From: Monocercomonoides exilis PA203
Taxonomy: Eukaryota > Protista > Preaxostyla
NCBI GenBank assembly: GCA_001643675.2
Contig: LSRY02000018.1
Location: 1,240,001-1,304,000 of the forward strand
Reading direction: 5' to 3'
DNA: 64,000 nt
Below the pieces are notes generated by a model. The model saw only the letters and a program-made list of their open reading frames with translations, searched no databases and was not told the origin of the DNA. The position numbers and the translations under genes were made by a program. Below are positions 3,671 through 57,307 of the stretch, in pieces (positions within the stretch are counted from its first letter, which is position 1; each line of letters opens with the position of its first letter).

Positions 3671-4144
3671 AGGCAAAAGGATATGATAGGGGAACACGAA
3701 TTTTTCAAAATCTTTATAATAAACGGAAATAATATTGTATAAGAATCATTTATAAATTAATTAAAATTTGAGATCATCAATCATATAAATTTCTTTTATT
3801 CAATCAAAACATTTTGATCTGACCCAGTATTTTTTTAATAATTTGGGTTTAAATTCAAAAATAATCTCCACATTAATAGATTGGTTTAGGTTCTAGGGTT
3901 TGCGTAACAAATCTTGGGTTTAGGGTTTGTTCCCGTTCTTCTTTTTAGGGTTAGCACTCAAAAATATCATGAAAATTCATTGATCTATCCCATAAATATT
4001 AAGAATCCTTGATTATTATTTATCAAAAAAAAATTAGATGATCTCAAATTTTTATTAATTAATAAATGATTCTTATACTATATTGAATTCGTTAATAATA
4101 AAAAATTAGAAAAAATCGTGTTCCCCTATAATATTCATTTGCCT
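3671..4144. mobile_element. inverted-repeat element / MITE family B (~110-bp imperfect arms) with telomere-like motifs in the spacer
   Basis: Left AGGCAAAAGGATATGATAGGGGAACACGAATTTTTC...TTTGAGATCATC pairs with right GATGATCTCAAA...GAAAAAATCGTGTTCCCCTATAATATTCATTTGCCT. No clear TSD. Confidence 0.7.
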
Positions 4145-5595
4145 ATCTTGCTCATATCTCTTTTCATTTTTCAATTCCGCCATCTTCACTATTTTAGTTC
4201 CAAAAGAAAATTTTTATCCACAATTTTCAGATCAATTTGTATATAAAAAAATAACTGATATCTCAAACTTATTTTGTACGATACAGCGGATGGATTTTTT
4301 CTGTCAATTCTTTTTGAAAAGGTGAAACACACATGTGTTGGTAGAAAAAATAATATTTAAGATTATTTTTGAAACTGTTTTGTTCCATTTGAATGAGGAA
4401 ACCAACAAAATAAAAAAATTATTAAAAATAAATAATTATTAATATTATTAATAATCATCAGAGTGCATATTTTTTATTGCAATTTTTTATTAACCCTTCG
4501 TTGTATGAATGATTATCAGTTGAATCAAGATATCTTTTTGGAGCGAGGATTATGACAAAGTTTCAAATCAGTAGAAAATCAATTCTTGTCGAAATTGTCC
4601 ATTTATATTTATGATGATAAAAGCTTCTAAGAACGGAGATTGAAAAAAGACAAATAACTTCTTTTTTGATTTGCCAACTTTTTTTCTTCGTTCAATCTTA
4701 TTTGTTAAAATTTTCAAACCAAAAATAAAGATTTATGAAATTTTGATTTCAAACGCAATCACCTATATTATCTTCTGTAATTTTTGTTCAATAAAATCAT
4801 ATTTGTAAAAAACTGAAATGAACAAAAAACATTAAAATAAGTTTGTTGATATTTCGAAGACTTGAATTAGAATTTGAAAACAGATTAATGTTTTTTCTTT
4901 TGAAAACTTAATTTCACATTTTCTGAAAAAGCTTGGTTGAGTCGGAAAAGCTAATTAAAAATGAGCAAAAATATTTTCATCTCAATAAATCACAAACAAA
5001 AATAAAAGCATAAACCTGAAAAGAATTGAATCAACTATGTTTTAATCTCTCATTTTTTCAACAGAAAAAGTTATTCTTTTCTCGGGTGCTGTGATTAAAA
5101 ACGAAAAATGTGTCAATAAATCGAAAAGCCCTAGAAAAAGTCATCAATATTCAATGAATAAAATGTTAATAAGGACAATATTTTGCAAAACTCAAGAAAC
5201 CAACAATCATTGACAAATGGGCAATACACGCTATCAAAAGATATTGGGTGGTTTTTTTATCCGGACATTTTTTTTATCCGGACAGAAATTTTAAAAATTT
5301 GTTTAATCAACCTGCTTTTCATATTTCATATGTTGTTTTTTGTATATAAGGAAAAGTCAGCAGTTAGAAATATAGATTAAATTACTACATCTAATCTCTG
5401 ATGGGGGGAGATGGGTAGGGGGGGTTAGCTCCTGCATCTGTGATTTGTGCCTCCTCTGAAGAAATAAGGTGATAGCAAGGTGTATTACTAAGTTAGAAAT
5501 TAATCGAAAAAAATAATATTTTTATTTGTTTTTTCATAACAAAAAATTTTTTTTGAAAAAGTTAAAAATAAGATCATAACCAACATTTTATTCGT

Positions 5596-7194
5596 ATGAG
5601 CGAAGAGAAACAAAGAAAAGATAGTCGTTTGACGAAATTGAGAGATTTGATGAAATCTTTCCAGTATCATCAAATTCAAAATCGATTTGAATGTGTTGCT
5701 ACAATTATTGCTGATGGAAAATCCCATGTTATCGACTCTGCTAATCTCAATGAATTCTCTCATTCATCGGTAAACTGAGCCGTTGCTGCAGTTGAAAAGG
5801 GTAGAACCGTGGGAAAAGTTGGTCGACCAGAGCTTTTCACAAAAGAAGAAAAGGAAGTGATAACAGGAGTTATCAGAATTGAAAGCATGACAGGAGTGAG
5901 TTATTCTTTAACTCCAACAAAAAGATTGGTTTGCATTAATTTTTTTTCTTATCAATATTTGTTATTTATTATAATGAAAGATGGAATCAGTGCTAACTGA
6001 CAGAAAAATTCGAAGTGGAGAAGAATAAGATCAAGAAGTTAAAATTTCAAAATCAACTCCGTACTCATTTGTCAAACGACATCCAGATCTTAAGACATCC
6101 ATTCCTCATAACGTTGATATTCAACGTTTATTGGTATCAAACAAGCAGTCTCTTCAACCTTTCTTCTCTCTTCTGCAATCACTTAATGACTCTAACAAAT
6201 ACTCCACTTCACTCATCTTCAACACCGACGAATCCTCTTTACGTCTCTCCGACTTTTCAAAAAATCTTGCCGTTCATCTTTCGGATGTTCCAGTTGGATT
6301 TTCAAAAGCTCCAATCGACATGTCAAACTCCACTCTTGTGGTTGCAGTTGCTGAAGATGGTAATTCTTTTCATAATCTTATTCTTTAGCAGTCGAAGAAA
6401 TTACAACCAAAAATGAAGGTCTTGCTCAGCCCGCAACTTCTTGCCTGGGCAGGCAATGACGGATTAATGACAGATGCATTGTTTGCTCGCTATGCTGAAA
6501 AGATACTACTGACTGGAATTGTCCAAAAAAGAAAATTATTTGATAGGAACGAAGATAGATGCTTGCTTATCTTGGATTCTCATCCTTCACGGTCACAGCC
6601 AGATCTTTGGCAAAAATTTGAAGTTGCATCAATTGGTGTCGTTACGTTTATTCCACATTGCACTCATCTTTCACAGCCACTTGACTGCGGAGTTTTTGCT
6701 GTGTTTAAAAGATGTTTCAACTCAAAAAATGTTGTTCCATCTTCTTCTTTGATCGCACTCAGACGAAAAGCAGTTGCAAATGCCTTGCCACAGGCTTTGC
6801 AAACTGCATTGTTTCCTTCAACAATTCACTCTGCATTTGAAAAGATCGGGGTGTTGTCTGGGCAATCCAATTCTGAATTTGTGAAGTTGTCTAACACTCC
6901 TTCAGTTCAGCTGAAAAAAAATCCCATCGTTTCAATTTCCATGGAAAAAATATATCCGACCAAGCATTTTTAGATGAATGGAAAGAATACAAAAAGATGA
7001 AAGATGAAAAGAAAATTGATGATTCTTCTGAAGAAAAAATTGAAAAAGATTTGTTTTTTGAAGAGAAGCCAAAAAAAAGAAAAATATCCAAATCCCAAAT
7101 TTTAAAAGATGATGATTTAGAAGATAATAATGAAAAAAAAAAAAATACCAGAAAAATTATTAAAAGAGAATTTATGGATTATATTTGCTATTGA
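5596..7194 (+). pseudogene. pogo/DDE_1-family transposase pseudogene with intron 5929-5980
   Basis: GRP motif before the HTH region; catalytic motifs IFNTDES, LLILDSH and HLSQPLDCGVF with 35 residues between the 2nd and 3rd Asp; in-frame stops at 5776 (TGA), 6026 (TAA), 6386 (TAG); frameshift near the A-run at ~6915. Confidence 0.9.
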
Positions 7195-7233
7195 TTGATG
7201 CATTTTTTCTAAAATTTCAACTTGCGATTTTAA

Positions 7234-7259
7234 ATATATATATATATATATATATATAT
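7234..7259. repeat. (AT)n microsatellite inside the transposon 3' region
   Basis: Seen directly. Confidence 0.9.
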
Positions 7260-7988
7260 TTTTATCAAAAAATAAAAATTACATCCGGATAAAAAAATCA
7301 CCCTAATCCAACTTCCATTTGATCGATTTTGATATCAATTCTTTTTTTTTCTCTTTGATTTTTATTTTGTAAAATAAGCGTTTTGCTATTAGAAAAATAT
7401 TATGAGTTTTCAAGGTTGTGATAAAAACCCAACAACAATAACAACAGCAATTTTGATGATTTTATTTTCAAAAAAATATTGATCCCAATGAATCTTTGAC
7501 CCTTCAAAAAACATATCCAAATATTTTTTGGCTGATATGTTTGATGCGCAATCATTATGAAAACGAATATTTCTGAATTTTTTCCTTTCTCATTCGTTTC
7601 TTGGGGAAAACAAAAAAAGAAAAAAAGATTTCAGTTATTGAATACATGGATATTATGATTGTTGTTTGAAGTGGATGAAGTGATTCACCGACAGCACAGT
7701 TGCCATCAAACAAAAAGTGTAAACAGTCATCTGCCTGCCCATTCACGAACAGCAACACCCTTCAAAAAAACCCCTGCTATCCATTAATGCAGACAGATCC
7801 TGCACGGCATCTTCATCTTATTTCTTTTCTTTTTTTCGAAATATTCATATCCCTCTTGTATCTTCCCCTTCCCGAAGCACATAATCGTTTCATCAAATCA
7901 AGTCTCATTTCCTTCAACTGATTGGGAGATTCCTTTGCTTCTCTTCTTCCCGTTTATCTCCATTCCCTCCATCCCTGGTCTTCTCTCC

Positions 7989-10924
7989 TCATTCAAATGT
8001 GCTGTATCCACTCACAACACTTCCACTTTGTGCATCTCCACTTTGTGCACTTCCACTTAGTGCACTTCCACTTTCTATTTTGCCTCTGTCTGTTGTTTCC
8101 TCCAGCCCAATTGCATCAGACACTGTCAGAACAGCACAGCCAGCCGGAAAATGACTGATGAATGCCCGCTTCAAGTCTGTGAGTGTTGGCCTGGCGTACC
8201 GGCCCATTGACAGACAAGCGATGGCTGCTTTCACTCCATCTGGCGAGCCTGCCCTCGCAACATCTGGCCTCTCCCCATTCGCTATCTTCTGTCCCGCCAC
8301 CTCTGCTGGATACTCCCCAAACGGGATCTCCAGCGTCAGGCACTCCCACAGCATCATCCCTATCGAGAACACAACAGACTTCTTCGTTGCCCCCATCTTC
8401 CTGTTCATCAGCAATTCTGGTGCCATCCATCGCAGACTTTCCTTTTTGTAATCGTTCTCATCCCCAAAGGCTGATGAAGGCAGAGAGTCACTGTCATCAT
8501 CATCATCACTTGCAGATGTCACAACTGTTGTTGATGAGATCGATGAGGAATCTGAGTCTGAAGATGAGAAGTCAGAGTGCATCACAATGCAGATAACCAT
8601 GTGTTCTGAAAACAATACAATGTGAGGGCTCAGAGTGGAAAGAGAAGATAATCCATTTTCCATTTCATCAAAGGAGTGAAGAGCAAGATTAGCCACCCAG
8701 AACAAGATCTGGGCAGCTGTCTGCTCCCTCTCCTGAAGAGTCCCAATTGCCATTTCTTTCTTCTCATTTCTTCCATGCAGAAGCATGAACAATGAATCCC
8801 TCAGATCCACAATCAACTTCTCATGTGGTGATGAGCATGCCATAGCATCCACCAGATTCGACATCGATGAAGTGGTTGGACATAGATCTTCACCTCGAAC
8901 AAAAGTTGTATCAGTATCAGTTGTTGAAGAAGTTGAAATGGAAGAAATAGAAGGAGAAGGCGTTCTCTTCCTTATCTCTTCTTCCTCTTCTTTCTCCAAT
9001 GCCCATTCAGGAATCTTGTCAGAGTCTCTTCCAAGAATGTATTCAGTCGATCCACTCTCAGATAGAAGATGCTCAGATGACTCTGAATGTTCCAAATTTG
9101 AATCACACACCCTCTTCTTTATTCTCTCTTCATTCTTCTTTTCTGCCTCTCTTTCTGCTCTCCTCCACTGCTCCTCGGGAGACATCTCCATCGTTATCAT
9201 CTCAATAAGCTTTGGATCCTTCTTCACTGTGTCATTCACAATCTCTCTCAGATCTTTTGCTTCATTCCTTGCCTTTCTCCATCGAACAACAAACATAATA
9301 AATCCAATCAAAGCTATCAGAAACAACACAGCAAATATCACAATCACAATCAATGCCCATGATGATTTTTCATCTTTTCCTCCTTTAACAATTCTTTCAT
9401 CGTCTTTTGATCCAGGACCACTTGCATTCTTTAGAATGAACGAGTTTGTTGAGAAGAGAGTATTCGAATTCTCAAACAAAATATGCACACTCACCTCAAT
9501 ATCACTTCCACAATTGCTGATTTTATCCTTTGCCACACTCCCTTCAACTTCTCTTTCTGACAAAAACCCATTTGAATCAAAATCATAATGTTCAATCTCT
9601 TTCTCTTCTCCCTTCTTCTTCACAACTGAGAACGATATATTGCATGGAACAAGAAGCATTCCTTTGAATGTCAGTTTCATTCTATCTGCCTCTTCTTTTG
9701 CTTCCACACTCTCCAGAACAGGAATGAAAAATGGAGATGCCCTCTCGGAAACAATCCCTTCAAAACTGCACCCATCATTCAACATCCAAAGTGAAGAGTT
9801 ATCCTTCCATCCATCTCCTCCTTTCAAACTTACCACATTCAATGTTCCAGAATCTGAGCAAATGATGTTTCTTCTCAATGATGTATATTTTTCAATTGAT
9901 GGATTATTATTTGAGAAATTTCCTGCTTCAATTATCATTTTTCCTCCACTCATTGTTATTCCACCATCTGGAGAATTTGCAATTGTTGTGTCTTTCATCA
10001 TCACGGAACTCTTCACAACATCCACAAGAGATCCATTCCATTTGCATATCTCATCGGTTCTGTCGTTTCTTCTCGATTCTTCTTTTGCTTCATTTCCCAA
10101 ATCTCCAAGGAAGTTGCAGGAATCAAAAATTGCATCAACACAATTATTAACGAACACAATCGTCCCTTTCTCCTTTGAGCTAAAACATTTTCCAAACGAA
10201 CAGTTCGACAAGCCAACTCTCTTTGCCGCATTCTGGATTTTCGCCACACTTCCACTTCTTGAAATTGTGATGTTCTCAGCATCCAATTCCTTCAATTCCA
10301 CTTTTGCAGTGTCCCCAATTTCAATCACGTTTCCCTCTGATTTCAAATCATCAATTCTTGTTTCTGAAATGATTGCTTTCGATTCCCCAATGAATTCCAT
10401 CAATGGCACTCTCAATTTCATTCTCATGGACACACATTTGTCCATCTCCAGTTCTCCTCCTTCAACTGCCATCACAATGCTTTTAATCGTTAATTCAGAT
10501 GTTGATGACAAACACTCACACTCCCTCATCATGGCTGTCCCGTTCTTCACTTTCATAACGCATTTGTGATTTGCTTCAAAGAGCTCTCCAAACTCATGCA
10601 CACATCTCTCCACAACACACTCATTCACAAATACAATCACACTTCCTTCACTTCCCATCTCTTGAATTGCTTCATTGAAATGAATTGTTGCCTTCGCCTT
10701 CTTCATTGACTTCACACACAAATCTCCAACAACACATTCACCTCCAATGTCTCCTTCGCCATCAATCCAAATAACATTTCCCACACCTCTTTGGATGTGA
10801 CTCACACTGCAGCTGACACTTTTGCACGGATTTGTCTGCGCTCCACACTGCCTATTGTTACTCCCATTTACTGAAATAAACACTTGCTGCCCAAAGAAGA
10901 ATGTGATCCGCGGAATCAGATCAA
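7989..10924 (-). CDS. 3' half of the transposon-interrupted giant receptor-like gene: end of ectodomain, one TM helix, kinase-like (pseudokinase) domain
   Basis: Open for 977 codons after the junction; TM WALIVIVIFAVLFLIALIGFIMFVV; kinase subdomains VIII-XI (LRWMAPELL, VVFSIGMMLWECLTLEIPF, GERP) but no HRD or DFG. The first ~19 aa of the listed 997-aa ORF derive from the element end. Confidence 0.85.
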
Positions 10925-11889
10925 TATGGCAAAATTTTTTTGAAAAGTTCCTCGAGTTTAATTCTATCCCACAAAAGATCACATTTGATCAAAAAATGTT
11001 GATCATTCCGTTCCCATTATTGTTTTATTAATATTTCATATTGTCATTTTCTGAGTTTATTATTGAAAAATAAGATACAAGTTTGTTGATATCATATGAG
11101 ATGTAAACTCTCGTTTCATATTTGATATTAAAAACAATCATTTTGTTGTTATTTGGAACATTCAAATGTTTTTGTTAATATTTGCCTTTTTCATTACATT
11201 AGTTTGAATATACATCTTGCTTTTTTGGATAATTACTCTTTTTTAATATCCTTGGTTGTTAGAAATTTTATAGAAAAAATTTGCTTGATTTGGAATGGTT
11301 TTTTTTTTGAAATTTATGAACAAAAAAGACTTGACATTTCACATCTCAAAACATGTGAATGATGTTCATTCAGTTGTTTGCAAAGGACAGTTTTTGATAT
11401 GAAAATTATAATATATATAAATATGAATAACCAGCAAGTTAATAATTTAAAAACCTTGGAATTGTGAAAACAAGAAAAGAACACATTTTTCACTCGTTGA
11501 ATCAAATCATGAATTGCATTCATATTCACTTTCGTTTCCATATTTATCTGACTTTTCAAAATACTTTTCTTCTTTCTTAAACGTGATGTCCGTAGAAAGC
11601 ATTCTCTATCTTTTTCCAACACTCGAAAATTGTGAGATTTTCTTTTCATGTTAATTTCACTGGAATGAAATACGAAGTTGTTACAGCTCCACCAATAAAT
11701 ATGCCCGAAAATGTGATTGAATTGACCAAAATTCTTCTTTTAGCAAACGAAAATCAGAAATTATCTCTTTGCTCTTCTTTAACTTCATTTTCATCTTTTT
11801 CAGTACATGGAGTGAGGAAGTGAGCATTCAGATCTTTTCACAAAAGATGCGTATGCATTCATGCCAACAACTATCTGATTTATCCTTCG

Positions 11890-14650
11890 TTGATGCTATC
11901 TGTGATAATACTGTTGGTGTTGCGATCTCCGCTGTTAAGGCTTGCGATGGTGAAGATGAATGACGAAACGATGGGTCGAGGGGTTGTAGTGTGTGAAGCG
12001 GAGGAGATCATGGAGAAGGGGCTGAGGATGGATGATGTGGTTCTGTCGCCTGCGGCTATTGAGCTGGTGGTGCTGGAGGAGCGAAAAGAGTAAGAGGAAG
12101 GAAGAGAAGAAAAAGAAGGAGAGTTACAAGATTGTGAAGCAGGAGATGAAGACGAGGTGTTCAGTATTCGCATGCTGTTGCAAAATATCCAAGATGACAA
12201 GCGGATATAGAAGCCGAATAGCGCTCTAGCAGAGCTGATGTAGGAGAATGACAAAATCAATATGATGCTGGAGAAGAAGATTCTAAAGTTGACCGAGAAG
12301 AACTTCACAGAGTTGAAGAAGCTGCAGGAACAGCTGCTGGAGACGCAGGATAAGACTGAATTTATTGATGAAAGGATAGAGAAAGAGAAAAAAGTGCAAG
12401 ACGCAGTTGTGTGTAGTGGTAAGTGTGGATAGCAATCTGTTGCCAGAGGGTTGGGTGTGTCGCTTGCCAAAACTTCATCGTTGGCCTCAGCAGGTCGCGG
12501 AATAGTTCTGTCTTCGGCTTTATTGATTCTGCCTTCAGGGCTGCATGAAAAGTTGTAGGAGAAGTTAATAGAGATCATCAAAAATGGAAGTGCTGCGATG
12601 CTTGGGCAAGATCCGAACAGGAAGGTTGTTACTGTGAAAGTCGGGAGCGAGATGAGTGTTGCATGAGAAGAAGACAGAGGTCGGGCTGAGAGTGCAGGAG
12701 GAAGTGGTGGAGGAGGCGAATGAGGAGTGGATGCAACAGTGCAGGAGAAAATGAACAAGATGGAGAAGGAAATGAAGATGCGGACAGTGATGATGAAAGT
12801 GCAGGAGCAGACGATAAGCGAGCAGAAGGTGATGTTCAATAATGTGACTGAAAAGCTAAAGACGGGGCTAATACAAAGCGAGAAAAAGCAGAAGAAAATG
12901 AAGGTGTTATACGAAGAAATTGTGGAGAGGTAGGTTAAGCAGGCTAAGGAGCTGGAGGAGCAGGTTTTGCGGGGGGAGATTGGCGGTGGCAGGGAAGGAA
13001 GGGCAGAGGAGAAACGGGGGAGAAGGAAAGTTGGGGCAGGGAGGAGGAGGAGGAGCAGCAGAAGCGGAGGGGGAGAATATAAGGAGGCATAGGAGGGGGA
13101 AAAGGCAGAAGAAAGAGATGCGGGTGCGGTGTATGGGATTCAGCTGTCGCTGCATGAGGATGCGAAGAGAGAGCGGGAAGACTGGATGCCAACTGGGGCA
13201 GAGGAAGGGGCAGGGAAGGCGACTGTTGCGCAGCGGCTGAACATGCTTCTTGAGCAGACGACAGACAGCCGAGACCGGGAAGAGTCGGAGTGGCCAGTGT
13301 CTTCGTGTGGTGGAACGGGGGCAGGGCAGCCTGGGGAAGGTGGGGTGTCTTTGCCGGTGGGGCCGACAGCGATGGAGCGGCTGATGAGCGCAGTGTCGGG
13401 GTCGCTGGGGCAGGTGGCGTACGAAACGGCGCATGTGCATTGGATGCCGCACATATATAAGTTGCATATTCCGATTCAGCTGAGTCAGCAGTTTCCAAAG
13501 ACAGGACTTAAGCAGAAGCAGGCGTGGACGCTGTCGAAGATTCAGGGGGTATATGGAGACAAGATATTGGCAGATTTGAGCGACTACAGAGCTTGCCGGG
13601 AAGGTGTGGTGCTTTCAATACAGGCCAAGAAGACTTTGAGAATATGTGATCGTGGGAGAAGTGCTCGGAGATATAGAAGAAAAATGTTGTGCTGATGGCA
13701 ATGATCTGCTTGATGTAACTATTCCGAAAGGAATTTGCGGAGGTGCGGCTGTTAGGAAGCATGTTCCGCAGGAGTTTTCCGAAGGCGAGCTGTCGTTCTT
13801 CCTGTACTGCTACACGGTTCTGTTTGAAAGCATTAAGACGTGGCAAGCTGTGGAAAAAAACGAAAACTTCCTGATGGTATTGTTCAAGGTGTATTAGAAT
13901 GCATCAGCACGGTGCTTGAAGTGCCGTCGGAGAATAAGATCAAGATGTCTTTTGGGGAGTTTGATGGGGTGAAGTCGGAGAATGGGGAGTTCGACGCATC
14001 TGTGTTTCTTGGATAGCTGTTGAATTACTACCGGGCAGAGGCAGTGAAGCGGAAGGAGGAGATGAAGAAGCTGCATGGTGTGATATGCAGTTGCGATATA
14101 TTGACTTTATCATCAGGCACAGTGTTCAGAGAGATCACGTACTCTGAGCTGGAGTCTCTTCTGCGTGCGCGCTATCCGCAGATGCAACAGGCGCTGTCGC
14201 AACAATCCTTCTGAGATGCATCCCATCTGTCGAGGTGCTTTCTGCCATCGTTTGCGTCTGTGCTGGAGGCGTGCTAGCCTAACAACTTCATCGCGCTATT
14301 CCTGCGACTGCAAGACATGCTTGTTTCAACCGATAGACAAGTGTTTCTATCACCTTTATAGAACAGTGCAGCTGCGGAGACGGTGAAATGGCACCTTGTG
14401 CTGCTGAAGCCTGCACTGTACGACCTTTGTATGTGCTTTCGGAGCTATCTGCAGGGATAGGGTTGAAGCTGTGCGCGAACGCTGTATAGTAGGCGGTGGG
14501 GAAGAAAGAATGGCGGAGGGCGCTGTTTCGAATGGCGCGGCTGCTGGTGGAGCTGGTGGGGCTGCAGCTGGGGAGGAACGAGGTGGGAGTTTTATTTTCT
14601 TTGGTCCGCTTCCGCTGGGCATGTAGTGCGTGGTGAAGATTCATGAGGCA
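11890..14650 (+). pseudogene. GC-rich decayed coiled-coil/Gly-rich gene fragment carried inside the TIR element
   Basis: One frame stays protein-like from 11890 to 13695 through 9 internal stops; further broken frames at 13646-14214; sharp GC step relative to flanks; no family recognised. Confidence 0.6.
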
Positions 14651-15019
14651 ATAATGTTGTTGAAGGAGGGATAAGAAGGCTATGCCTTTCCAACTGCTTT
14701 GTCGGAATTGCCATTATTAATGTTATCTTCTTTTCCTTTTTAATTTTCTTCCTGCCTCTTTTTCTTTCTCTTCTTTTTCTTCAAATCTTTAACACTCTGT
14801 TATTTTGGAATCTCCATTTTTCTTCCCAATTTGCTTTTGTTCCATCCAACAGCTCATTTTCCCAAAATTCTCCTTTAATAATTCACATCAATTTTCTTTC
14901 AAAGTATATTTTGAAAGAAACAAATATTTTATCAATCTTTTTTATGAGTTTTTTCTCAATAAATACTTCTAAAAAAAATGTTTGAAATGCAGGAAATGAA
15001 GGAGTTAAAGAAGTTTTTT

Positions 15020-15870
15020 CTGAATTTCTTGAACAATTATTGAATGAGGAGATTTCAACAGAAATTATTACAGAATCAGAATCTTGTATCACAATGTTGT
15101 ATCCTTTTAATAGCTTCACATCATCAGCTACAACCCAATTAAATGTAACTTCTTTGCTTTGTCCAATTTCAATGATATCTGATGTTGCCTCAATATGCTC
15201 TAATTTCACATTCATCAACGAAATCTGATCCCCACGAAGCACGAATGAAGGCTTGTAGAATGAAAGCATTGTTATCGAGCAGTTATCAACATGCAGAACT
15301 TTATTTTCGATGGTTAACAATGTTGGATTGAGAATAACAGATTCAATATTTTCTGATTGGACAACCGAAGAAAAATAAACAGATGAAAGAGAAAGTTGTC
15401 CGTTTGTTTCATGAATGATTGAATTGCCTGAATATGAAAACGATTTCCCAAAATTGAATTTCAATCTTTCAATTCGAATATTCTCTGTGGTTGTGATAAG
15501 GCTTCCCGCATTGCTGACAATCGTTAAGTTCAGATTGATCAGAGCGGTTGAGGGAGATTTCAACGAGTGAATGCTAACATTTTGCAAACTGCATTATCCA
15601 TTGATGATGGTTTCCTCCGATATCAATAGTTGCGAATATGATGAAGGAATGATGTGTTGAACTCCAACATCCAATGAATAACAGGGAGCACTCAACTCTC
15701 CACATTGTTTGCTATCTGCGTGATTGTCTGCAGTTATAGACACAAATATCGTCTCACTCTGGTATCTCATAACCCTCAGCAGAAGATATACTTCACCAAT
15801 AAACGAGTCGGTTGTGCATCCCCACATCGCCAGCTCTTTCTCAAAAGGTGCTCAGAAATCTGTAACACAT
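15020..15870 (-). pseudogene. captured internal fragment of a beta-helix surface-protein gene (same broad family as the host gene)
   Basis: IFVS...DSKQCGELSAPCYSLDVGVQHI matches the VFVS..D...CG....PC.S module of the host gene; ORFs 15594-15827 and 14883-15587 share a frame separated by one TAA; no start, signal peptide or TM. Confidence 0.75.
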
Positions 15871-16367
15871 TTGAAACACTAAAAAAGAAAGTGTCAAAAT
15901 TAATTAAACATAAAGAAAAACAAATAGCAAACCATCAATTTTTTAAAATAATTTTGTTCACTCCAACTTGTGCAAGCTGTATTTGCTTCCATGAAAGATG
16001 ATATTCAATCTGAGTTTAAAAAAATTCTGATTAAGTTAAAACTTAAGTGATCATCAGAATATTTGTTTATTCCTTTAAAAAATCTAAACAAACCATGAAC
16101 AATTCATGAAGTTGCAAATGCAAAATAGTTCAACATAATAAAACTCTTTTTCATTGTGAAACAAATAATTAAATTTTGATCAAAAAATCAGATATATAAT
16201 TTTTTGTGACAAAATGTTTTTTCTCATTTTGAAGTTTGCAATGAACTGATAAGCATTATAGTGAATTTTTTCGTTTTTGATGAGAATAATGGTAACGGAA
16301 TGAACAATAATTAACTTCAATGGGTCAAATATTTGATCTGATGTCACTTTTCAAAAAAATTTTGCCA

Positions 16368-19300
16368 TATCAATCTTTCCCTCCCCATCGCTCCCACATA
16401 TCGAGTCCTTCCCCTTCAGCGCTTCCTGGTCGAAATCCAGTTCAAACAGTCTTTCATTCAATTGTGAATCAATCGAATCACATCTGATGAACACATCCTT
16501 CCCCACAAACGCATCATTCATCATGAATCGGATGTTCTCCAATCTCAATCCAATTGGTAACATTTCTGTGTTGGTGTTCTTCTCATTTGGATCAAGTGCG
16601 TCAATCATCATCCCTCCTCCCCTTCCTTTGCCTGTTGAGCACACACACATCCCTAATGAACATCCACTCACTTTCAACTCCGACACTCCTCTCTTCAACA
16701 GCATCTTCATCCCTCCTCCTTCCACACTCTTCTCACTCATGCACTTCGTCATTATGCATCCTTCCACCACACACTCCATCCCAGCTGAGAACGATCCTGC
16801 ACTCATCACACATGCTCTGTTATCAAAACATGTGATGTTCGTAAACGAGGAGCAATTCACTTTCACTGTTTGTTTTGTGTTCTCCATTGCATTGTTGATC
16901 AACATATTTGCTGTGGATGACTGACTCAGTGACATCAGACTGCTTTCAGATATCGTTATGTTCGATATCGACATGTTCATCACATCAACAGTGTTCACAT
17001 CTGTTGTGAATTCCACGAACCCTTTCGCCAACAGGAACTGAGAAAGTGTGCAATCCTCAATCGCCACACTCCCTCCATCTGCTTTTATCAGACAATAATT
17101 CACTTTCATTGTTTCATCCTCACAAATAAATGAGCACCTCACAACTGAAAGTGTTGCAGAGGAGGTTGAAAATGATTGAATGAGCGAAGAATATCTCCCC
17201 AATTCATTTGGTAAACAAAATGACAAATTCGTGAATGAAACAATAATATTCGATGCTATCATTCCCCCTCCTTCTCCTTCACCTTCATTCCTTCCACCCT
17301 CACTCACTTTCAGATCTGTTCCTTCTCTCTCTCCCTCAACGGAAACAATTGGTATGGTTAACGATGATGACAGCAGTGACATTGATTTCTGAAGCAATCC
17401 TGATCTGACTATTTTGATGTGTGATTCGCCTTCTCCAAGTGTTGAATATCTCAGTGATTTCAGATAGTCAATTGATGAACATGGTGCTTCTGAATGCCCA
17501 CACCCACTGAAGTCTCCTCCTTTCTCCTTTGAAACAAACCCATCCCCACTCCAATTATCCCACAAATACACAACAAGTGGAATCACATATCTCTCCTCTC
17601 CTGTCATCTTCCTCTCCCATCCACACAACTCATCCAATGACTTCAACTCCCCTTCACTCATCTCCCATTTGAAGTGCTCCTTGTTCACAATCTCTCTCAG
17701 ATCCCATCCTGACACAAACACGTTCCTTCCTTTCCAAGCTTCGCATCCCTCAAATGTCATTCCTTCCATCACAAAGGATCCTAACTCTTCTGGAAGTTCA
17801 GCAAATATCCCTCCTCCTAATCCTCCTTTTTTCTCTGAACTATCCTCTGATGGAACTTCACATCCTGATAAATTCACATTTTTCATTTCCAAACTTCCTT
17901 CACTTCCAATTGATATCATCATCCCTCCTCCTTTCATTCCACTTCCACCTGAACATCTTGAGGATATATTGCTTTCTTCAATTTTCACATTCCCATTAAC
18001 GCCCATCCCAACATTCAAGCATCCCCCTCCTCCATTTCCACCTGCCATATCCACCTCCACTCCATTCATTCTGCTGTTCAATATCTCCAGTTTCACTCCA
18101 CTTGTCATTGTGATTGGTGATTTCCTATTCATCTTCAGTGTCACTCCACTTTCCATCACAAATCCATCAACAATCAGATTTCCTCCTGCCATCTCAATGA
18201 TGCTGTATCCTATCTTTCCATCAGTCAATGCCCCACTTTCAAATGAGACTGAACAGTTCGTCACACTGAGTGTTGATGATGTTGAATGGATGAATGCACT
18301 TCTCCTTGAATTCAGCTGACCTTTCACAACAAATGAAAGTCTGCTCATTGTCAGTGAACTCGAACATCCAACGAGCCAATCTTGTGTGTCTGATCCTCCA
18401 TCACTTACATTCACTCCCATCCTCTCTCCATCGGAAGAAACTATTCTGCCTGAAATTAACACACCAAATGATGGTACTGTGATTTCCTTGGTTATTGACG
18501 AAGGTGAGATAACCTCTATTTCATTCACAGTGCTGCTCAATCTTGAGTTCGCACAATAATCAACTGTCTGGCACCTGAATGCCTCAAATCCACAATGGTT
18601 GTGATCCATCCCATTTCCTCCACTCCCATCAACAATCACCTTTGTTCCCATTGTGCACAAATACACAAACAGTGGAATAACTTCATTTTCATCCCCATTA
18701 TCACTCCCACTCAGTTTCAACACATCTGATGGAATCGACAGTGGAGTGAAGAATGCAAATGAGCTGGTATTCACTTTTGACTCCAAAAACACTCCACTCC
18801 CACAACTCACAAACACATCCTTCCCATATGTGGCATTATTCTCAATCACTTTCGAAAATTCAATATTCTCTCCAATTGTCAATCCACATCCCCCACTCTC
18901 CATCTCCACAAACATCCCTCCTCCTCTCCCTCCATTTCCTTCAATTCCCACTGCAACACATCCATCGATCACACTCATTCCATTCATCACAACTTCCCCA
19001 TTATCTGTCAAACAAACACAAATTCCCCCTCCATTTCCTTCTTCACACACGCAATTTTCAATCGACACATTCTGCACAGAAAATTTCTCTCCTCCCTTTA
19101 TACTCTTTTCCACCACGACTCCATTTCCTTCTGTTGTCCGATTCACATTTCGAACTGTCACATTCACTAGCATTCTCTCTCCGGATGTTGATCCTGCTGA
19201 TGATGGTTCAACAAACAGTTGCTGAGATATTTTCATGTTTTTGATCTCAACGTCACTCATCCTCAATTGCGACAGAGCCATCACAAATACCGATGAAGAT

Positions 19301-21570
19301 ATTACGCTCTCTTCTGATATTGAAGAATTGATCAGAACATCCTCCAGTGAAAGTGTCCCACTCCCAGACGAAACGACAAACACACTCGGAGATGAGCTCC
19401 TTGTCGTGTTGTGATCGATACCCAAATGTTGAACATTCAACTGCCCACTCTTCACACTGAACAGTGTTGTTGAAGATACAGAAAGCGATTTTGTTCCAAT
19501 CAGACTTTCTTCTCTTCCATTCCCCACAACACTAATTATCTTATCTCCGATGTCAATTGTTGAGATTTCGCTTTGATGTTTCCCACTAAGGACTGTGATT
19601 GTCGAGCTCGATTGCATCAAACTCACAAAAACAACAAACTCCACTGTTTTGCACGGCACTGCCTCGCTCATCCCACACAAACTCCTCGTGTCGTCTCCAT
19701 TTTCCCCAACAAACCGATTCTTTGGCCCTTCCTTTAACCACCATTTCTTTTCTGTCATTTGAAGACTACTCCCATTGTAACACACTCTCTCATCATTTGT
19801 ATTTGTCGTGTACGATTCATAGAACGGATTGCTTGACGAAAAGAGGTTGTTATCATCTTCAAAATACACATCATGGCCATATGGAGTGGAACTTGTGCAA
19901 TTGCAATTGTGAAAAAAGATGAAATGGCAGTAATGACTGTTGCTCGAAACTGTTTCCATTTGTGGGTCCAAAAGCAAGCCTCCTCCATATGACGATGCAT
20001 TGCATGAAATAAACTGAATGCTCCTCATTTTGAATTCACTTGGAATATTGCGACAGGACAAGCCTCCACCATTATCATTCACAACAGAGCACGAAATGAA
20101 GCGGCAATCAAACACACATGCACTCTCACCTCCTCCGTTTTCTGATTCAATGCAGTTTGTTGCTGAAACCTGAAAGTTGTCGAGATTAATCCCTCCTCCA
20201 TTGCTTGTTGCTTTGCAACTCTTGAATTCGCATCTGCTTATCCGAACGCATTTTGAAATTGTAACAACATACATTCCTCCTCCAAAATGGTTTTGAGCCG
20301 TACATGAGTTGAATGTATTGTATTCTATGTGAGCAGATTTAACTGAATGACACATTATTCCCCCTCCGCGACTGTGCGCAACGCATTCATTAAAGGAACA
20401 GTGAGAAACAGAAAGTTCTCTATTCCCCAAATTTACCATGCATATAGCCCCTCCATTCGATAATTTGTCTGTAGAAGAATCACTCTTTCCTGTTGTGCTC
20501 GATCCGTTCCACTCGCACCAAGTGAATATATTTGCTCCATTGTCTGTTATGTTCTGTCTCCCTGGTTTAAACGGTACCTCTGCTGTTCCATTAATAACTG
20601 CATTTCTTGCCCTTCGACACTCTATGAACGAGGTGTTTGAGACTGTCAAAGATGCAAAGGGGTTATTTATTGAAGGAACAATTCCCCCATCATACACATC
20701 ACAGACTGATGAAAATGAGCAATCATTGATCAAAGTGTTTGATCCACATCGCAAAGATGAAGTGACAAATCTGTGTGTTGGAGCTGTTGAAATATTGGAG
20801 AAAAACAAATTAGTGAGTGAAACACTCTCAACATTTGAAGAAGACAGAAATGGAGGTGAAGAAGTCTGGAATGAAGAAAATTCAGATGAGAAAATTGAGA
20901 CAAAATTGGAAGACTGGCTTTTTAAATCACTCAATTTTGTGGAGAAAAGAGGAGGCATTTGAGTTTGTTGTGAATTCCAAAATCGAAGTGTCAAGTTTGC
21001 CAACAATAATCGACTCCCACACAAATCAAATGGGCTTATTCCATTTCTGACTTCAAAACGGCACCCGATGACCATTGCAACACTTTTAATGCTTAAGGTT
21101 ATAGAACTTGTATTTCCATTTCCTATCAAATCCAGATTCGCGCACGAAAGAGACGAGTTACTCAGAATAACATGGCTCATCACTTTGCTTTCTTCAAGGC
21201 TCGTCCAAATCCTCTTTCTGTTGCGCACATAAACATTTTGTGCATCTCCTTCAATTAAGTCAACATTCCTGTTTGTGTTTGTGTTTGGAAATTCAATTCT
21301 GTTGTTCTGATTCTTTCTCCATTTACCTTTCCATTCCACAGGCTCATAGTATTCAGGCTTGTTCTCGTTGTATTGAACTTGAATGTGAGTTTTCTTTGTA
21401 TTGGAACTATTTTCAGTTTCCATTGAAGCTATTGAAGCATCTGCAGGAATTATTTGCAAAATATTCAAATCACGAATTATTCCAATTTTGTCGTTTGTAG
21501 CATCTTCGTGAAAGCAATGTCCGTAAATTATACTCCCCAAAATAGCAGCGATAGAAATCAACAAATTCAT
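16368..21570 (-). CDS. 5' half of the transposon-interrupted giant surface protein gene: signal peptide plus Pmp-like/pectin-lyase-like parallel beta-helix repeats
   Basis: ATG at 21570 (MNLLISIAAILGSIIYG); repeated GG(A/G)(I/M/L) motifs preceded by FxxC; recurring CG....PC modules; 1734 open codons to the junction; the terminal MAKFF* is read from the TIR. Confidence 0.9.
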
Positions 21571-22769
21571 TTTGGCGTGCAAAATGGATTTTCTTTTTTC
21601 TTTTTAGAGATCAATTATTATTAAGGGTCATATTGATCATAAATATTATAATCAGATTTTCAACTGAAAATAGATTTGTCTTTCATTTCATTCCTTTCGC
21701 AATAAAAATGAAGAAAATAAATAGCGCATGTTGACCTCTTTCGTTTTTCCTTCATCATTATTTCAGTTATCTTCTCAAAATATGTTCCTTTTCGAAGTTT
21801 TCATTTCAGAATAATGATGATGATATTTGAAAGTCTTCAGAATATCGAGAAACATATGTCACTTATTTTTTCTTGCAATTTCACAAAAAAGAAATCTTTT
21901 GAAGCAACTCTAAAAGAAATTTGTTTTTCATGATCTCCAATTCTCATTTTTCCATGTTTATTTTTCAACTTCATTCTTTTTGATTGTTCTCAATTATATG
22001 GTTGGTATCCTCTTTCCATTGAAAAAAGTGCCTCTTTATCAATTGAAGTGGAAATATCTTGCGGTATATCACGAAAAGAAATTGTTTTTTTTAAAAGAAC
22101 ATAAAAATTGCTTCAGTGATAAGAAGCAGCAAAAACCAAGGATTCATCAACCATGTCCCAAATGTTTCAAACGTTTTATGCTTCCTTTCTGAAAAGACGT
22201 GAAATCCGAATTCTCAGTCACCTGAACTTGAAATGACTGAATGTTTGAAAGAGATAAATTAGATTGAACAAAAGGCTAAATAAGAATAAATAATTGAAAT
22301 CCGATGCACAAAAGAAGATGCAGCAGTGAAAATAGTTGCTTGAGTTTTTCACTCATGAAAACGCAAGGAGACGGTTGTTGATGTGTTTTTTCGTTCTTCT
22401 ATGAATACATGACCAAAAGAAACAAATTACGTGATTAATTTGCCTTTTCATATTTCTTTATAATTGAAATACCGAATATCGTTATCCTTGGCTGTTTTGA
22501 AGAGATTTATATGGAAAAAACAAAACAAAAAATTGTTCAAATATTTCTGCCCATATCAAAATTTTATTATTTTTGATTGAAAAAAGATTCTTTTTTCGAA
22601 GGGCAACAACGTGTGAATTTTCATAACTTTTTGTTTGGAGTGCAAATTTCGTTTGGAACCTTTTTTGCTCACAGACTTACAAAAATCTGGTGCACAATTG
22701 CCATTTTATTTGCTTCTTTTTCATAGGTCACCTTTCGAGCCTTCACCTCCTCAGCAAACATACGTGATA

Positions 22770-41257: not shown

Positions 41258-41788
41258 TATAATTTTTGCTATTTTTTTTTAACTTTATTGCAAGTTTTGG
41301 ATGGAAAACAATACCAAATATCTTTCAAAAGAATATTTTAATTTTTCATAATTACAATTTCAAACATTTACGTCTTTCCATTTGGAAAGTTACAAATGTT
41401 TAATTGTCGATCAATTTTTTTTGATTTCATTTCTTGATCGGATTTCATTTCTCGCTCACAAAACTTCACAAAAATAGAAGCTATCACTTGACAATGAAAT
41501 AATATTCTTTCAAGAGAAGTTTGCAAGCAGAAAAATGAATTAGATCAAGAAAAAAATTTTTATTTTTTTAGAAAATTAAACATTGAAGTCTTTTATTTTT
41601 GAAAGAATAACACATTTTTGAACTCTATTGAATTGTTTTGTTTTCGTGCGAAATCTTTGAAAAATTTTTTTCATTTTTTAAAGAAAAATATTTTCATTTC
41701 ATAAATATAAATTAATAATTATTTTGTAAAGATAATTTTTTATTTAATAATTAAATGAAAATGAAAATTTGAATATTCACGTCTAAAT

Positions 41789-42028
41789 GGGAAATTATTT
41801 TTGAAAAGTCGCAAATGTTTAATTTTCAAATAAATAAAAATTTTCATATTTTTATGAAATTTTTGTATGCGAACATCAAACATCACAAATATGGAATCTA
41901 TTTCTGGACAATGCTATTTCAAACATTCTTAAGAAGATTAGTGAGCTGAAACAGAAATTTGAATTAAATATGAATATTTTGATTTACTTAGAAATTAAAC
42001 ATATGCGACTTTTCAAAAAGAATTACCA
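41789..42028. mobile_element. 240-bp MITE family C with ~80-bp imperfect TIRs and 4-bp AAAT TSD
   Basis: AAAT|GGGAAATTATTTTTGAAAAGTCGCAAATGTTTAATT ... AATTAAACATATGCGACTTTTCAAAAAGAATTACCA|AAAT. Confidence 0.7.
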
Positions 42029-50603: not shown

Positions 50604-53600
50604 TTATTGTTGCTGTTGCTGTTGCTGTTGCAGTTGTTGTTGTTGGAGCTGCTGTTGTTGCTGTCTCTGTATCTGCTGCAGCTGCTGAATCTGCTGCAAT
50701 TGCTGCAGCTGTTGTAACTGCAACTGCAACTGCTGCTGCGTCTGGAGTGATTGAAAGTCTGTAAAATAACCACCAGACAACACTTGCAGAGGAAATGCCT
50801 GTGTATTTGTTGCACCAGCGATAAGTGGCTGAGTAAGGGCATGTGCAGCGAGCTGGGCAGAGGCAGAAGAAGAAGCAGAAGAAGAAGCAGAGGAAGGCGT
50901 GAGCAAAGCAGAAGGAGCAGTCATTGCCTGCACAACAGGATTGGCAGTCAGAGCAGCAGCCAGTGTGCCGAGGGGAACAGAAGTGCTGTCATTCTGTCCT
51001 GTCTTCATGGCTGACACGTTGGACGTTGACAGAAGAGATATGGAAGAGTTCTGTGCTGGTGCAAAGAGAGAAGGCAACTGTGAGTCATTTTGTGGGGCTT
51101 TTCTTGTTTCTCTCTGGCGAAGTGGTGCTGGTGATGGAGAGCGGGACGAGTTGTCAGGAGAAGGTGAATGAGAGAGGGAATTGGAATTAGATCGAGAAGA
51201 GGAAGAAGAACGAGAACGAGAACGAGAACGAGAGGGAGAGCGGGAAGGAGAAGAGGATGGGGTGGAGGAGAGAGAGGCATTTGAAGGAGAGGAAGAAGGA
51301 GAAGGCGAATCTGCATCATCAGAATGAGTCAGATGGGTGGATTGTGGTAGTTGAGAATGAGAAGATGTTAATGAAGAGCTATTCAAAGAAGAAGGAGATG
51401 TTGTTGATGGATTAGCAGCAGCAGCAGTCGAAGAAGAAGAAGAAGAATTAATCACATTATTCAGCGATGCCATTGCACCAGCTGATGAGCTGCCTCGTTG
51501 AACAGGCTGTCCAGAAAGTGATGAAGGCGATGTGTTCATGTTCAGATGCTGCTGACCCAATCCAAACGGAAGCAGCTGCGAAACAGATGGCGGGGTGCTC
51601 AGCAGAGAAAGGAGGGACTGCAGATTGAGTGGAGAAGACAGAGCAGACGAGGAAGAGTTGGCAAGAGAAGTAGCAAGTGCTGCAGCATCAGAGGAAGTGC
51701 CAAGCAGCTGTGAGGCTTGCGATTGGAGTGACTGAAGGAGGGATGAGCTGGAAGGAGAAGAAGATAAAGAGGACAAAGAGGATGCAGATGAGAGAGAAGG
51801 AAGAGAAGAGAGAGAAGAGAGAGAAGGGAGTGCAATGGGCTGAGTTGGCAGTGTGGTGGTTGTTGGCTGAGATGCAGCAGAAGAAGGAATTGTGGAAGAG
51901 GATGATAAATCTGAAGAGGGAGTAGATGATGGCGATGATGAAAGATTTTCTGGAATTACAGAAGAAATCGAAGAAGTGGAAGAAGAAGTCGATGAAGAAG
52001 GTGTTGCCAAAATTGGTGTCTGTATTTGTTGCTGTGCTTGTGCTTGGACAGGCAAATCATTCTGTTGTGGAAGAGCAGAAGAGTCAGACGCTATTTGCTG
52101 GCTCTGAATTTGAGTTTGTGGTTGTGCCAGTGTTTGTGCAATCGCTGGATTCTGCTGTCCTCCTTGCACAATCTGCGCAATCTTAGCCATCTGCTCGTTC
52201 GTCAGCGACAGCATCGCTGCCAGCGCCTCTGCTCCTTTGCCTCCAAACGCTCCTCCTATTCCTCCTGCCCCAGCTCCTCCTTCGCCTTCTCCACTCCCTG
52301 CCGCTGCATTCGGTCCAGACACAGAAGATGCACTTGCTTCACCCGCATTCCCTGCACTGCCTGCATTCAGCGATGCAAACTGAGCTCCGGCTGATGGAAG
52401 TGCCAATCCGCCTCCAGCAGCAAGAGCAGGCAGCGACATCTGTGGCAGCACAGCGCCTGGAAGAAGCCCGCCAAACAGTTGCTGCTCAAGTGTCGTCCCC
52501 TTTCCAGCACCAAACAAAGAGCCAGGAAACATTTGCGAGCCAGTGCCAGTGCCAGTTCCAGAACCAGTGCCAGAGTGAGGGTGAGTGCGAGAGCGAGAAT
52601 GCGAACGAGATCTTGAGTGAGTGTGAGTGTGAGCGTGTGAGTGCCGTGTGTGTCTGCGGGTGGAGTGGCTCTTTCTGTGCCGTCTGTTGTGTGCTCTGTG
52701 TTTGTGATGGCGTCTCCGCCTTGAACGAGAAGCGATACGCGAAACGGAGCAGGAGGGTGTGGTGGAGTATGAGGAATAACCAGAGGAAGAATACGAGCCA
52801 GAGGCTGAGGTGTTTGAGGTGCTGTAGGAGGAAGAAGAGGAAGAAGAGAAGGAGCGGGAGCGGGAGCGGGAGAATGAGTGACTGGCTATCCTGGCAGGTG
52901 TTTGTGCTGTGGATGCACCAGATGAAAGAGAAGATGAAGCAGCAGACTGCGAAAGAGCAGCATCAGAATAAGCAGGTTGCTCATCACGAGAGCTGCGTCT
53001 TCCTCTCTCTCTGCCTCTTTCTCTTTCTCTTTCTCTTTCTCTTTCCCTCTCTCTTCCGATACTGCTGCTGTTTGTGAGGAAAGGATCCAATTGTGGCGGA
53101 GGCAGAGGCAGAAGCGGAGGGGGACGAGAATATGAGGCATAATCGCCAGAAGGCAGATGCCTTTCTCGGCTGTATGAAGAGCGATGTCTGTGAGAGTCGT
53201 GAGTGTGTGAATGAGAATGAGAACGAGAGTGAGAAGAAGAAGAAGAAGAAGATGATGATGATGACAATGAAAGAGAAGAATTTGAGAGCAACGGAAGCAT
53301 TCCGCGGTTGTATGCAAGAGAGACAGGAATAATGGAGCTTGAAGGTGTTTTGAGGAGAGGATCAACATTGACAGGCATCCGAGAATAGGGAGATGCGAAA
53401 GAAGGTGTATGAGAAAGAGGAGAGGAGGAAGAAGATGATGATGAACGATTTGACTTATATGAAGAAGAAGAAGAAGATGATGATGATAATGATGATGAAA
53501 GAGGTGGTACTGGTGGTGTATCTAGCAGATGTTGATGAGAAATACCTGGCTGGCTGATGCTGTCTTTAAATCTACTCCTTCAATGGATCATTCAAACAGA

Positions 53601-56082: not shown

Positions 56083-57275
56083 CTATGAAGAAGAATCCAA
56101 CTCACTTTCTTCGACTTTTTCGCTTCTTTCTTCATTGCTCTTGTCTTCATTACCTGCTTCTGCATTATCATCATCAACTACTTTTGCTTCAGCTTCTTCC
56201 TCTGCTTTTTCTTTTTCTTCTTCTTCTTCTTTTTGTTCATATTGTTCTTTTGCTTCATCAATTTTTTCATCTTCGTCTCCTTTTTTCTCTTCATTTTCTT
56301 CATTTTCATCTGTTTCTTTTGTTTCTTCTTTCTCTTCTCCTTCATCTTTTCCTTCTTCTTCATTCAAAATTTCATTTTCCTTTTCTTGTTCTGCTTCTCT
56401 TCTTTCTTCTTGTTCATCTGCTTCTTCTTTTACAGCTATGCTTTCTTTTGCTTCTGTCACTTCAGCATTTTGCGGTTCAATTTCTTCCTCTCTTTTTTGT
56501 TTTTCTTCTTTTTTGGTTTCTTCTTCACCTTCCTCTTCACCTTTCTCTTCTTCTCTCTCTTCTTTCTCCTCCTTCTCTTCTTTTTCAAGTGTGTCTGATT
56601 CATTCAACAGTTCATTCTTTTCGATCTTTTCTTCAGTTTTATTCATCTCACTTTCAACAACATCTTTTTCTTCTTTCTCTTCTTCTGCTTTTTCTTCTTT
56701 TTCTTTCTCTTCTTTTTCTCCTTCCATTTCTTCCTTCTCTTCTAATTGCACATTATTTTGTTCTGTCTCTTTTTGACTCTCACTTGCTTTGATATCTTCA
56801 TCCTTTGTTTGCTCTTCAGCTTCTTCCACATTTTGGCTCTTTTCTTCTAATTCTCTTTCTCTTTCTCTATCTTCTTCTTCTTTTCCCTCTTTTTCATTCT
56901 CTTCCTTCTCTTCCTTTTCTTTCTCTTCCTTCTCCTCCTCACTTATTTTTTCTTCTTTCTCCTTCCTCTCTCTTTCCTCTTCTTTTTCTTCCATTTTTTC
57001 TTTCTCTTCATCCTTCTCTTCATCCTTCTTTTCTTCCTTTTCTTCTTCCTTTTCTTCTTTCTTCTCTTCTTCTTCTTCATCAAATTCTTCTTTTGTCTCG
57101 TAAATTATCGAAGGAACAGAGCGATGGAAGCAAATCACCTCAACAGATGGGCTCTTCTCCATGTGTGGCTGATCGTCTGATGGGTTATTATTATTATTGT
57201 CATCTTCATTAACATTATTGTTATTTTCATTATCATTTTCTTCTTCATGAGAAGAAGAAGAAGAAGAAGAAGAAG

Positions 57276-57307
<32 letters not shown>

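Follow-up and report, generated by a model that had tools for sequence, protein, structure and literature searches.

A giant surface-protein gene of Monocercomonoides exilis very probably disrupted by recent insertion of a 5.4-kb non-autonomous cargo transposon

The split gene and its family

The 64,000-nt stretch of Monocercomonoides exilis PA203 DNA analysed here (contig LSRY02000018.1, positions 1,240,001 to 1,304,000; hereafter the window) carries two giant open reading frames (ORFs) on the minus strand, separated by a 5.4-kb element with terminal inverted repeats. The 1,743-aa ORF (16351-21582) has the C-terminus GEGKID-MAKFF-TGA, in which the final five codons and the stop are terminal-repeat sequence. 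The 997-aa ORF (7989-10982) starts within the other terminal repeat and reads ...KKFCH-IDLIPR across the junction. When the element and one TA were deleted in silico, the two frames joined through GKIDIDLI into a single frame of 1,734 + 978 = 2,712 codons. We conclude that a 2,712-codon intron-less gene, hereafter the host gene, has very probably been disrupted when a non-autonomous transposon of 5.4 kb, bounded by terminal inverted repeats, inserted by a cut-and-paste mechanism. The parts of the host gene are as follows.

16369-21570, minus strand: upstream half of the host gene, 1,734 codons; signal-peptide-like N-terminus and large ectodomain, with the final residues GEGKID at the insertion
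16351-16353, minus strand: premature stop (TGA) from the terminal repeat, preceded after the junction by the five codons MAKFF; read directly
7989-10925, minus strand: downstream half of the host gene, 978 codons plus stop; remaining ectodomain, transmembrane segment and cytoplasmic kinase-like tail
9291-9359, minus strand: transmembrane segment WALIVIVIFAVLFLIALIGFIMF, the sole strongly hydrophobic segment in a hydropathy scan of the rejoined protein
8163-8453, minus strand: kinase-like C-lobe (PF07714, E = 1.2e-8, profile positions 162-257 only)

An earlier note on this DNA had stressed that the gene is split exactly in frame. The arithmetic is right, but the agreement is no special property, because the frame of any ORF hit by an insertion is recovered when the element and one of the two duplication copies are taken out. 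The agreement therefore counts as evidence for the single-gene model only.

To examine the single-gene model independently of the frame, the final 300 aa before the junction and the first 300 aa after it were searched separately against the genome (82.3 Mb, 101 contigs). Among the matches listed, each query matched more than 130 paralogous loci. At no fewer than 35 loci listed in both searches, the upstream and downstream matches abut to the base within single ORFs of ~2,700-3,100 aa, for example at C34:210113-211012, followed by 211013-211939. Altogether, the genome contains more than 100 paralogues that run uninterrupted through the homologous point as single ORFs of 2,700-3,100 aa. The nearest paralogue (C12:1328575-1330371) is 89-90% identical and lies inside a 2,739-aa ORF, with which the host gene shares 83% aa identity over the full length. 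Alignment of the rejoined DNA with this and a second close paralogue covered 457 bp with zero gaps, and the paralogue sequence across the joint is GKTDINLIPLIT, compared with GKIDIDLIPRIT in the host gene. Since the paralogues are colinear across GKID/IDLIP without a gap, the alignment confirms the earlier proposal of one gene split by the element.

The second-closest paralogue (L044, C12:1417000-1425000) is itself frameshifted into frames of 1,541 aa and at least 796 aa, the latter value being a lower bound because that frame runs beyond the stretch examined; no transposon lies at the break. The other giant ORFs of the window (56083-61692 and 50604-53378) were considered as paralogues and rejected as unrelated.

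The insertion site is the linker between two ectodomain modules, with an A-TA-T target. Since the downstream half alone contains the transmembrane segment and the kinase-like tail, the predicted product of the upstream ORF is an ectodomain that has no membrane anchor, as the earlier note had proposed. Translation of the upstream part would now terminate in the terminal repeat, after five codons of it. The downstream part encodes both membrane anchor and kinase-like tail and would be deprived of its start and promoter. We infer that the host gene would thereby have lost its function and, as far as the data show, the insertion is a fixed knockout in the clonal strain that was sequenced. An older gene model of 1,690 aa, MONOS_6328, matches the upstream half with 100% identity; it ends 13 residues short of the junction. 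A crude count of dN/dS (nonsynonymous to synonymous change) against the nearest paralogue gave ~0.45 and ~0.38 for the two halves, values that reflect the history before the insertion and are uninformative on decay since then.

The host gene is a member of the M. exilis tyrosine-kinase-like (TKL) surface-protein family, with full-length colinear homology to family members that includes the PF07714 tail. This assignment is based on database entry names and on PMC8767320 and PMC6759080. TKL is the largest gene family of M. exilis, and 320 of the 332 predicted tyrosine kinases are tyrosine-kinase-like (PMC6759080). The family also overlaps much of the 'unclassified repeat' fraction, which makes up a third of the genome (PMC8767320). 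The host gene resembles the other members in being ~2,700 aa long and in having a signal peptide, a very large ectodomain, a single membrane segment and a C-terminal PF07714 match, and differs from them in being interrupted. The HRD motif was found neither in the host gene nor in any of 70 long or full-length relatives (labelled P0002-P0120); DFG or DFS is present in 9 of the 70 long relatives. Because HRD is missing throughout this set, the cytoplasmic domains of the subfamily are probably pseudokinases. The missing motif would argue against catalysis, not against membership of the TKL family.

The transposon, its cargo and its twin copy

The element and the features within and around it are given below.

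10925-10926, no strand: left copy of the target TA
10927-16367, no strand: non-autonomous cargo ('Pack-type') transposon of 5,441 bp, delimited by terminal repeats and target duplication
10927-10948, plus strand: End A terminal inverted repeat TGGCAAAATTTTTTTGAAAAGT, with the subterminal sequence TCCTCGAGTTTAATT common to miniature and other long copies
~12136-14691, plus strand: decayed fragment of a GC-rich multi-copy gene, with 69-76% DNA identity to loci on C42, C41, C9, C59 and C52
15009-15860, minus strand: decayed surface-protein cargo fragment, oriented like the host gene
16346-16367, minus strand: End B terminal inverted repeat, with the subterminal sequence GACATCAGATCAAA common to other long copies
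16368-16369, no strand: right copy of the target TA

The two terminal repeats are exact reverse complements, identical at 22 of 22 positions; the inverted repeat appears to be 25 bp long only because ATAT is a palindrome. Chance would be expected to yield ~0.02 matches to TGGCAAAATTTTTTTGAAAAGT in the window at up to three mismatches. Across the genome, the terminal repeat has 526 matches at up to two mismatches, compared with 1 for the reversed control. These ends, of the TGGCAAAA type, belong to a family that comprises miniature elements of ~242 bp and elements of 4-8.6 kb with two distinct subterminal ends (A and B). A further match in the window, at 41788-41809 on the plus strand, is degenerate (three mismatches) and is possibly an old solo end.

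In all seven paired elements, the two bases outside TGGC...GCCA form a direct duplication (TA, TT, CT or AA). At 30 ends the duplicated dinucleotide was TA in 16 cases, AA or TT in 10 and another in 4, and the base outward of it was A every time, so that the flanks fit A-NN-T. A duplication of 2 bp (with a TA preference and an A-NN-T context) and one of 4 bp (ANNT, with GGCAAAA termini) fit these data equally well and predict an identical empty site. At the host gene, a 6-bp duplication of ATCAAT was rejected and TA favoured, because the paralogue alignment is gap-free and the 6-bp version would remove two residues relative to every paralogue. An 8-bp duplication of the Merlin type (8-9 bp in that superfamily) was likewise rejected, as the 8-bp flanks of the window, C18 and miniature copies are not direct repeats. 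The host gene family was matched by only 2 of the 30 sampled element flanks, both of them from the window copy.

In its short perfect terminal repeats and short, TA-preferring target duplication, the element is similar to Ds in maize exons and to MITEs (miniature inverted-repeat transposable elements) derived from Tc1/mariner or pogo, although the duplicated dinucleotide of its family is not strictly TA. It also shares with non-autonomous cut-and-paste transposons and MITEs the hundreds of copies, including miniatures of ~240 bp, the lack of an internal transposase and the truncation of a product by insertion into an exon.

A twin of the element is situated at C18:1044845-1050279. The two copies are 99.8% identical; within the element they are distinguished by 4 substitutions, one indel of 3 bp and four of 1 bp in homopolymers. 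The twin has unrelated flanks and a TT duplication of its own, which shows that it arose by transposition and not by segmental duplication. Both copies are real, since the four substitutions occur as variant bases in public reads. After this twin, the closest relative is 83% identical. The 99.8% identity at an unrelated locus, the perfect terminal repeats and the still open halves of the gene support well the claim of the earlier note that the insertion is recent. The left terminal repeat of the C18 copy (L041, C18:1043845-1051279) is TGGGTAAATTTTTTTG, two substitutions away from the family consensus, and the DNA flanking that copy is a short repeat of the TTTCGATT type.

The interior of the element had been described as heavily decayed. 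It is indeed full of stops, but its content is decayed fragments of two other genes and not a decayed transposase. The first fragment (15009-15860) corresponds to an internal portion of other giant ORFs (2,500-3,100 aa, at least 150 of them), with 60-67% aa identity; by sequence similarity these ORFs are a sister family of the host gene. The DNA homology begins abruptly at 15860, directly after a splice-acceptor-like ...ttacag, at a residue homologous to ...FEL|DFDQ of the host gene; the homologue of the present insertion point lies only 23 codons farther downstream. By a post hoc estimate, a cargo start would fall within 70 bp of the site in a gene of 8.1 kb with a chance of ~2%; the proximity may be coincidental or may point to linkers as a preferred target.

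The second fragment (~12136-14691) includes an ORF at 13129-13695 with protein-level similarity to the GC-rich gene loci. At the four of these loci examined (C42, C59, C52 and C9) the ORFs are longer and the copies more intact. Within 9.9 kb, no terminal repeat was found at three of the four, and C52 has one repeat of the End B type. The gene has 56-70% GC, compared with 37% for the genome (L063 = C42:799500-809400, L064 and L066), and contains coiled-coil and low-complexity parts in three reading frames over ~4 kb. No Pfam match was obtained for it, and a look-up in the ESM Atlas gave nothing above chance; it may be a gene of the host or may belong to another mobile element.

As the interior is built from host-gene fragments, the element was classed as Pack-type. 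It resembles the Pack-MULEs and Pack-CACTA of plants in having the ends of a MITE family around fragments of unrelated host genes in differing orientations, and in being still mobile. It differs in its host, an oxymonad protist, in its target duplication of 2 or 4 bp in place of the 9 bp of the Mutator type, and in that several long family members have parts of the same cargo, at 67-83% identity. This shared cargo indicates that at least part of the capture is old.

Pfam detected no transposase domain in the 5.4-kb element, in which no interior ORF has a Pfam match, and none among the ten longest of 139 ORFs (at least 110 aa) from 11 long relatives. The non-autonomous nature of the element, part of the original proposal, is thus supported. 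The other part, mobilisation in trans, would require a transposase encoded elsewhere, and no source was identified. Many uninterrupted DDE_1 and DDE_3 frames are present in the genome. Pogo/Tc1-mariner and Sola are the candidate superfamilies; for Sola, the A-NN-T pattern seen at all 30 ends would allow a 4-bp duplication, which is indistinguishable here from one of 2 bp.

Empty site, reads and competing explanations

The earlier note had suggested a search for the empty-site junction. The assembly contains no exact empty site, and a 32-nt junction probe (up to three mismatches) matched only two close paralogues, with three mismatches each. Four public DNA runs of one sample were then compared with window positions 10650-16640 at a 95% identity threshold. 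In run X3, a short-read contig spans the occupied left junction (10650-10961), reaching 35 nt past it. In run X2, one contig skips 5,443 bp (10923 to 16367). The bases of this contig at 10869 (T>C), 10875 (A>T) and 16415 (T>C) are all three those of the paralogue at C12:1329461, it terminates near the point where the two nearest paralogues diverge, and its depth matches that of single-copy sequence in the run. According to its publication (PMC6759080), the culture is clonal and monoploid and has ~0.04 single-nucleotide polymorphisms per kb, which makes a second allele with three differences in ~190 bp implausible. The X2 contig is therefore probably the uninterrupted paralogue, aligned at the 95% threshold. 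The data give no evidence of excision, polymorphism or a switch. At the homopolymer at window position 12388, the four runs have one A fewer than the window, which reflects either an assembly error or the presence of only the C18 version in the read contigs.

Some observations weigh against a simple disruption by this element. The X2 contig skips exactly the element plus TA, and its bases within ~15 nt of the joint are unreported; the mismatches expected there would fall under the reporting distance or the share threshold. An autonomous partner with matching terminal repeats was not found, the repeat being present at none of the ten sampled DDE_3 and mariner-type (Transposase_1) loci. Furthermore, the sole transposase remnant inside any family member is a DDE_1 remnant in the long member L031. 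This remnant begins, 335 bp inside End B, with a TA|GGGTGA end of its own and is thus a nested element of another family. DDE_1 segments with 90-94% identity to it occur at other loci, among them C25:502308 and C28:909926. Accordingly, the assignment to pogo that it would have offered was rejected, the remnant being a nested pogo-like element with GGGTGA ends.

The competing explanations differ in which of these observations they can accommodate. The older annotation, in which the upstream half is a gene of its own, would suit two truly separate genes with a transposon in the spacer. With more than 100 paralogues continuous across the point, a rejoined sequence that needs no insertion or deletion, and a downstream ORF that lacks a separate start beyond the terminal repeat, the probability of this arrangement is negligible. 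It is also hardly credible that the assembly misplaced the C18 copy of the element into an intact gene. The short-read contig crosses the left junction, the junctions coincide precisely with the ends of the terminal repeats, next to a duplicated TA, both variants at the 4 substitutions between the window and C18 copies occur in reads, and the older 454-based model MONOS_6328 stops 13 aa before the junction. Such an artefact could draw on the nanopore basis of the assembly (PMC8767320) and on the existence of small errors, of which the A at 12388 would be one. Polymorphism of the insertion in the culture or the species, with the ancestral empty allele persisting alongside the occupied one and no switch, is unlikely. 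The insertion is very recent and the skipping contig has about single-copy depth, as this would predict, but that contig carries paralogue bases, the culture is clonal and monoploid, and the occupied junction is seen in run X3.

The earlier note had gone further and proposed a reversible switch, in which precise insertion and excision toggle between a membrane receptor and an anchorless shed ectodomain. Several features of the locus invite this idea, namely the stop five codons into the terminal repeat, the membrane segment confined to the downstream half, the position of the insertion in an inter-module linker, the recent mobility of the element family and the contig that skips 5,443 bp. We nevertheless consider the switch very unlikely. 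The skipping contig has the three diagnostic bases of the paralogue at C12:1329461 and ends near the divergence of the two nearest paralogues, the assembly is without an exact empty site, the culture is clonal and monoploid, and the element exists in two copies only. In addition, cut-and-paste elements with 2-4 bp duplications usually leave excision footprints, most of them frame-shifting, so precise reversion would be rare. The likeness to the phase variation caused by bacterial insertion sequences extends to the idea of a mobile element toggling a surface gene. The present case differs in its eukaryotic host and in that neither an empty or reverted allele nor evidence of precise excision was found in the assembly and the four runs. 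Disruption by cut-and-paste insertion thus remains the preferred reading.

Two further elements lie elsewhere in the window. A decayed pogo-like element of ~2.06 kb (5246-7303, plus strand) is located 0.7 kb past the split gene's 3' end. Its terminal repeats are 32 nt long and start GGGTGGTTTTTTTATCCGGA, its helix-turn-helix and DDE_1 pieces are scattered over several frames, and it is colinear with the nested remnant of L031 at 47-57% aa identity. In addition, positions 3671-3778 and 4037-4144 are the two arms of a 108-nt inverted repeat; they are 85% complementary, are separated by 258 nt and probably mark another small element with terminal repeats.

Implications for the TKL family and the M. 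exilis genome

For annotation, the two apparent giant ORFs, of which the upstream one had been MONOS_6328, are to be treated as one pseudogenised TKL member. Given that the genome is rich in repeats and that this gene family may occupy about a third of it, a transposon insertion into one of the genes is expected. The knockout of one among several hundred family genes is biologically ordinary and gives no sign of a regulatory role.

A more far-reaching proposal is that an active cargo family spreads pieces of giant surface-protein genes, with linker insertions creating expressed truncated ectodomain variants. The start of the cargo fragment only 23 codons from the position homologous to the current insertion offers a hint in this direction, but on the sequence evidence we regard the proposal as quite unlikely. 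If true, it would constitute a transposon-driven route of diversification for the largest gene family of M. exilis.

The element family is previously undescribed. At least one non-autonomous DNA transposon family has moved very recently in M. exilis, an oxymonad. Cargo elements of this kind, with their fragments of surface-protein genes, may partly explain the 'unclassified repeat' third of the genome (PMC8767320).

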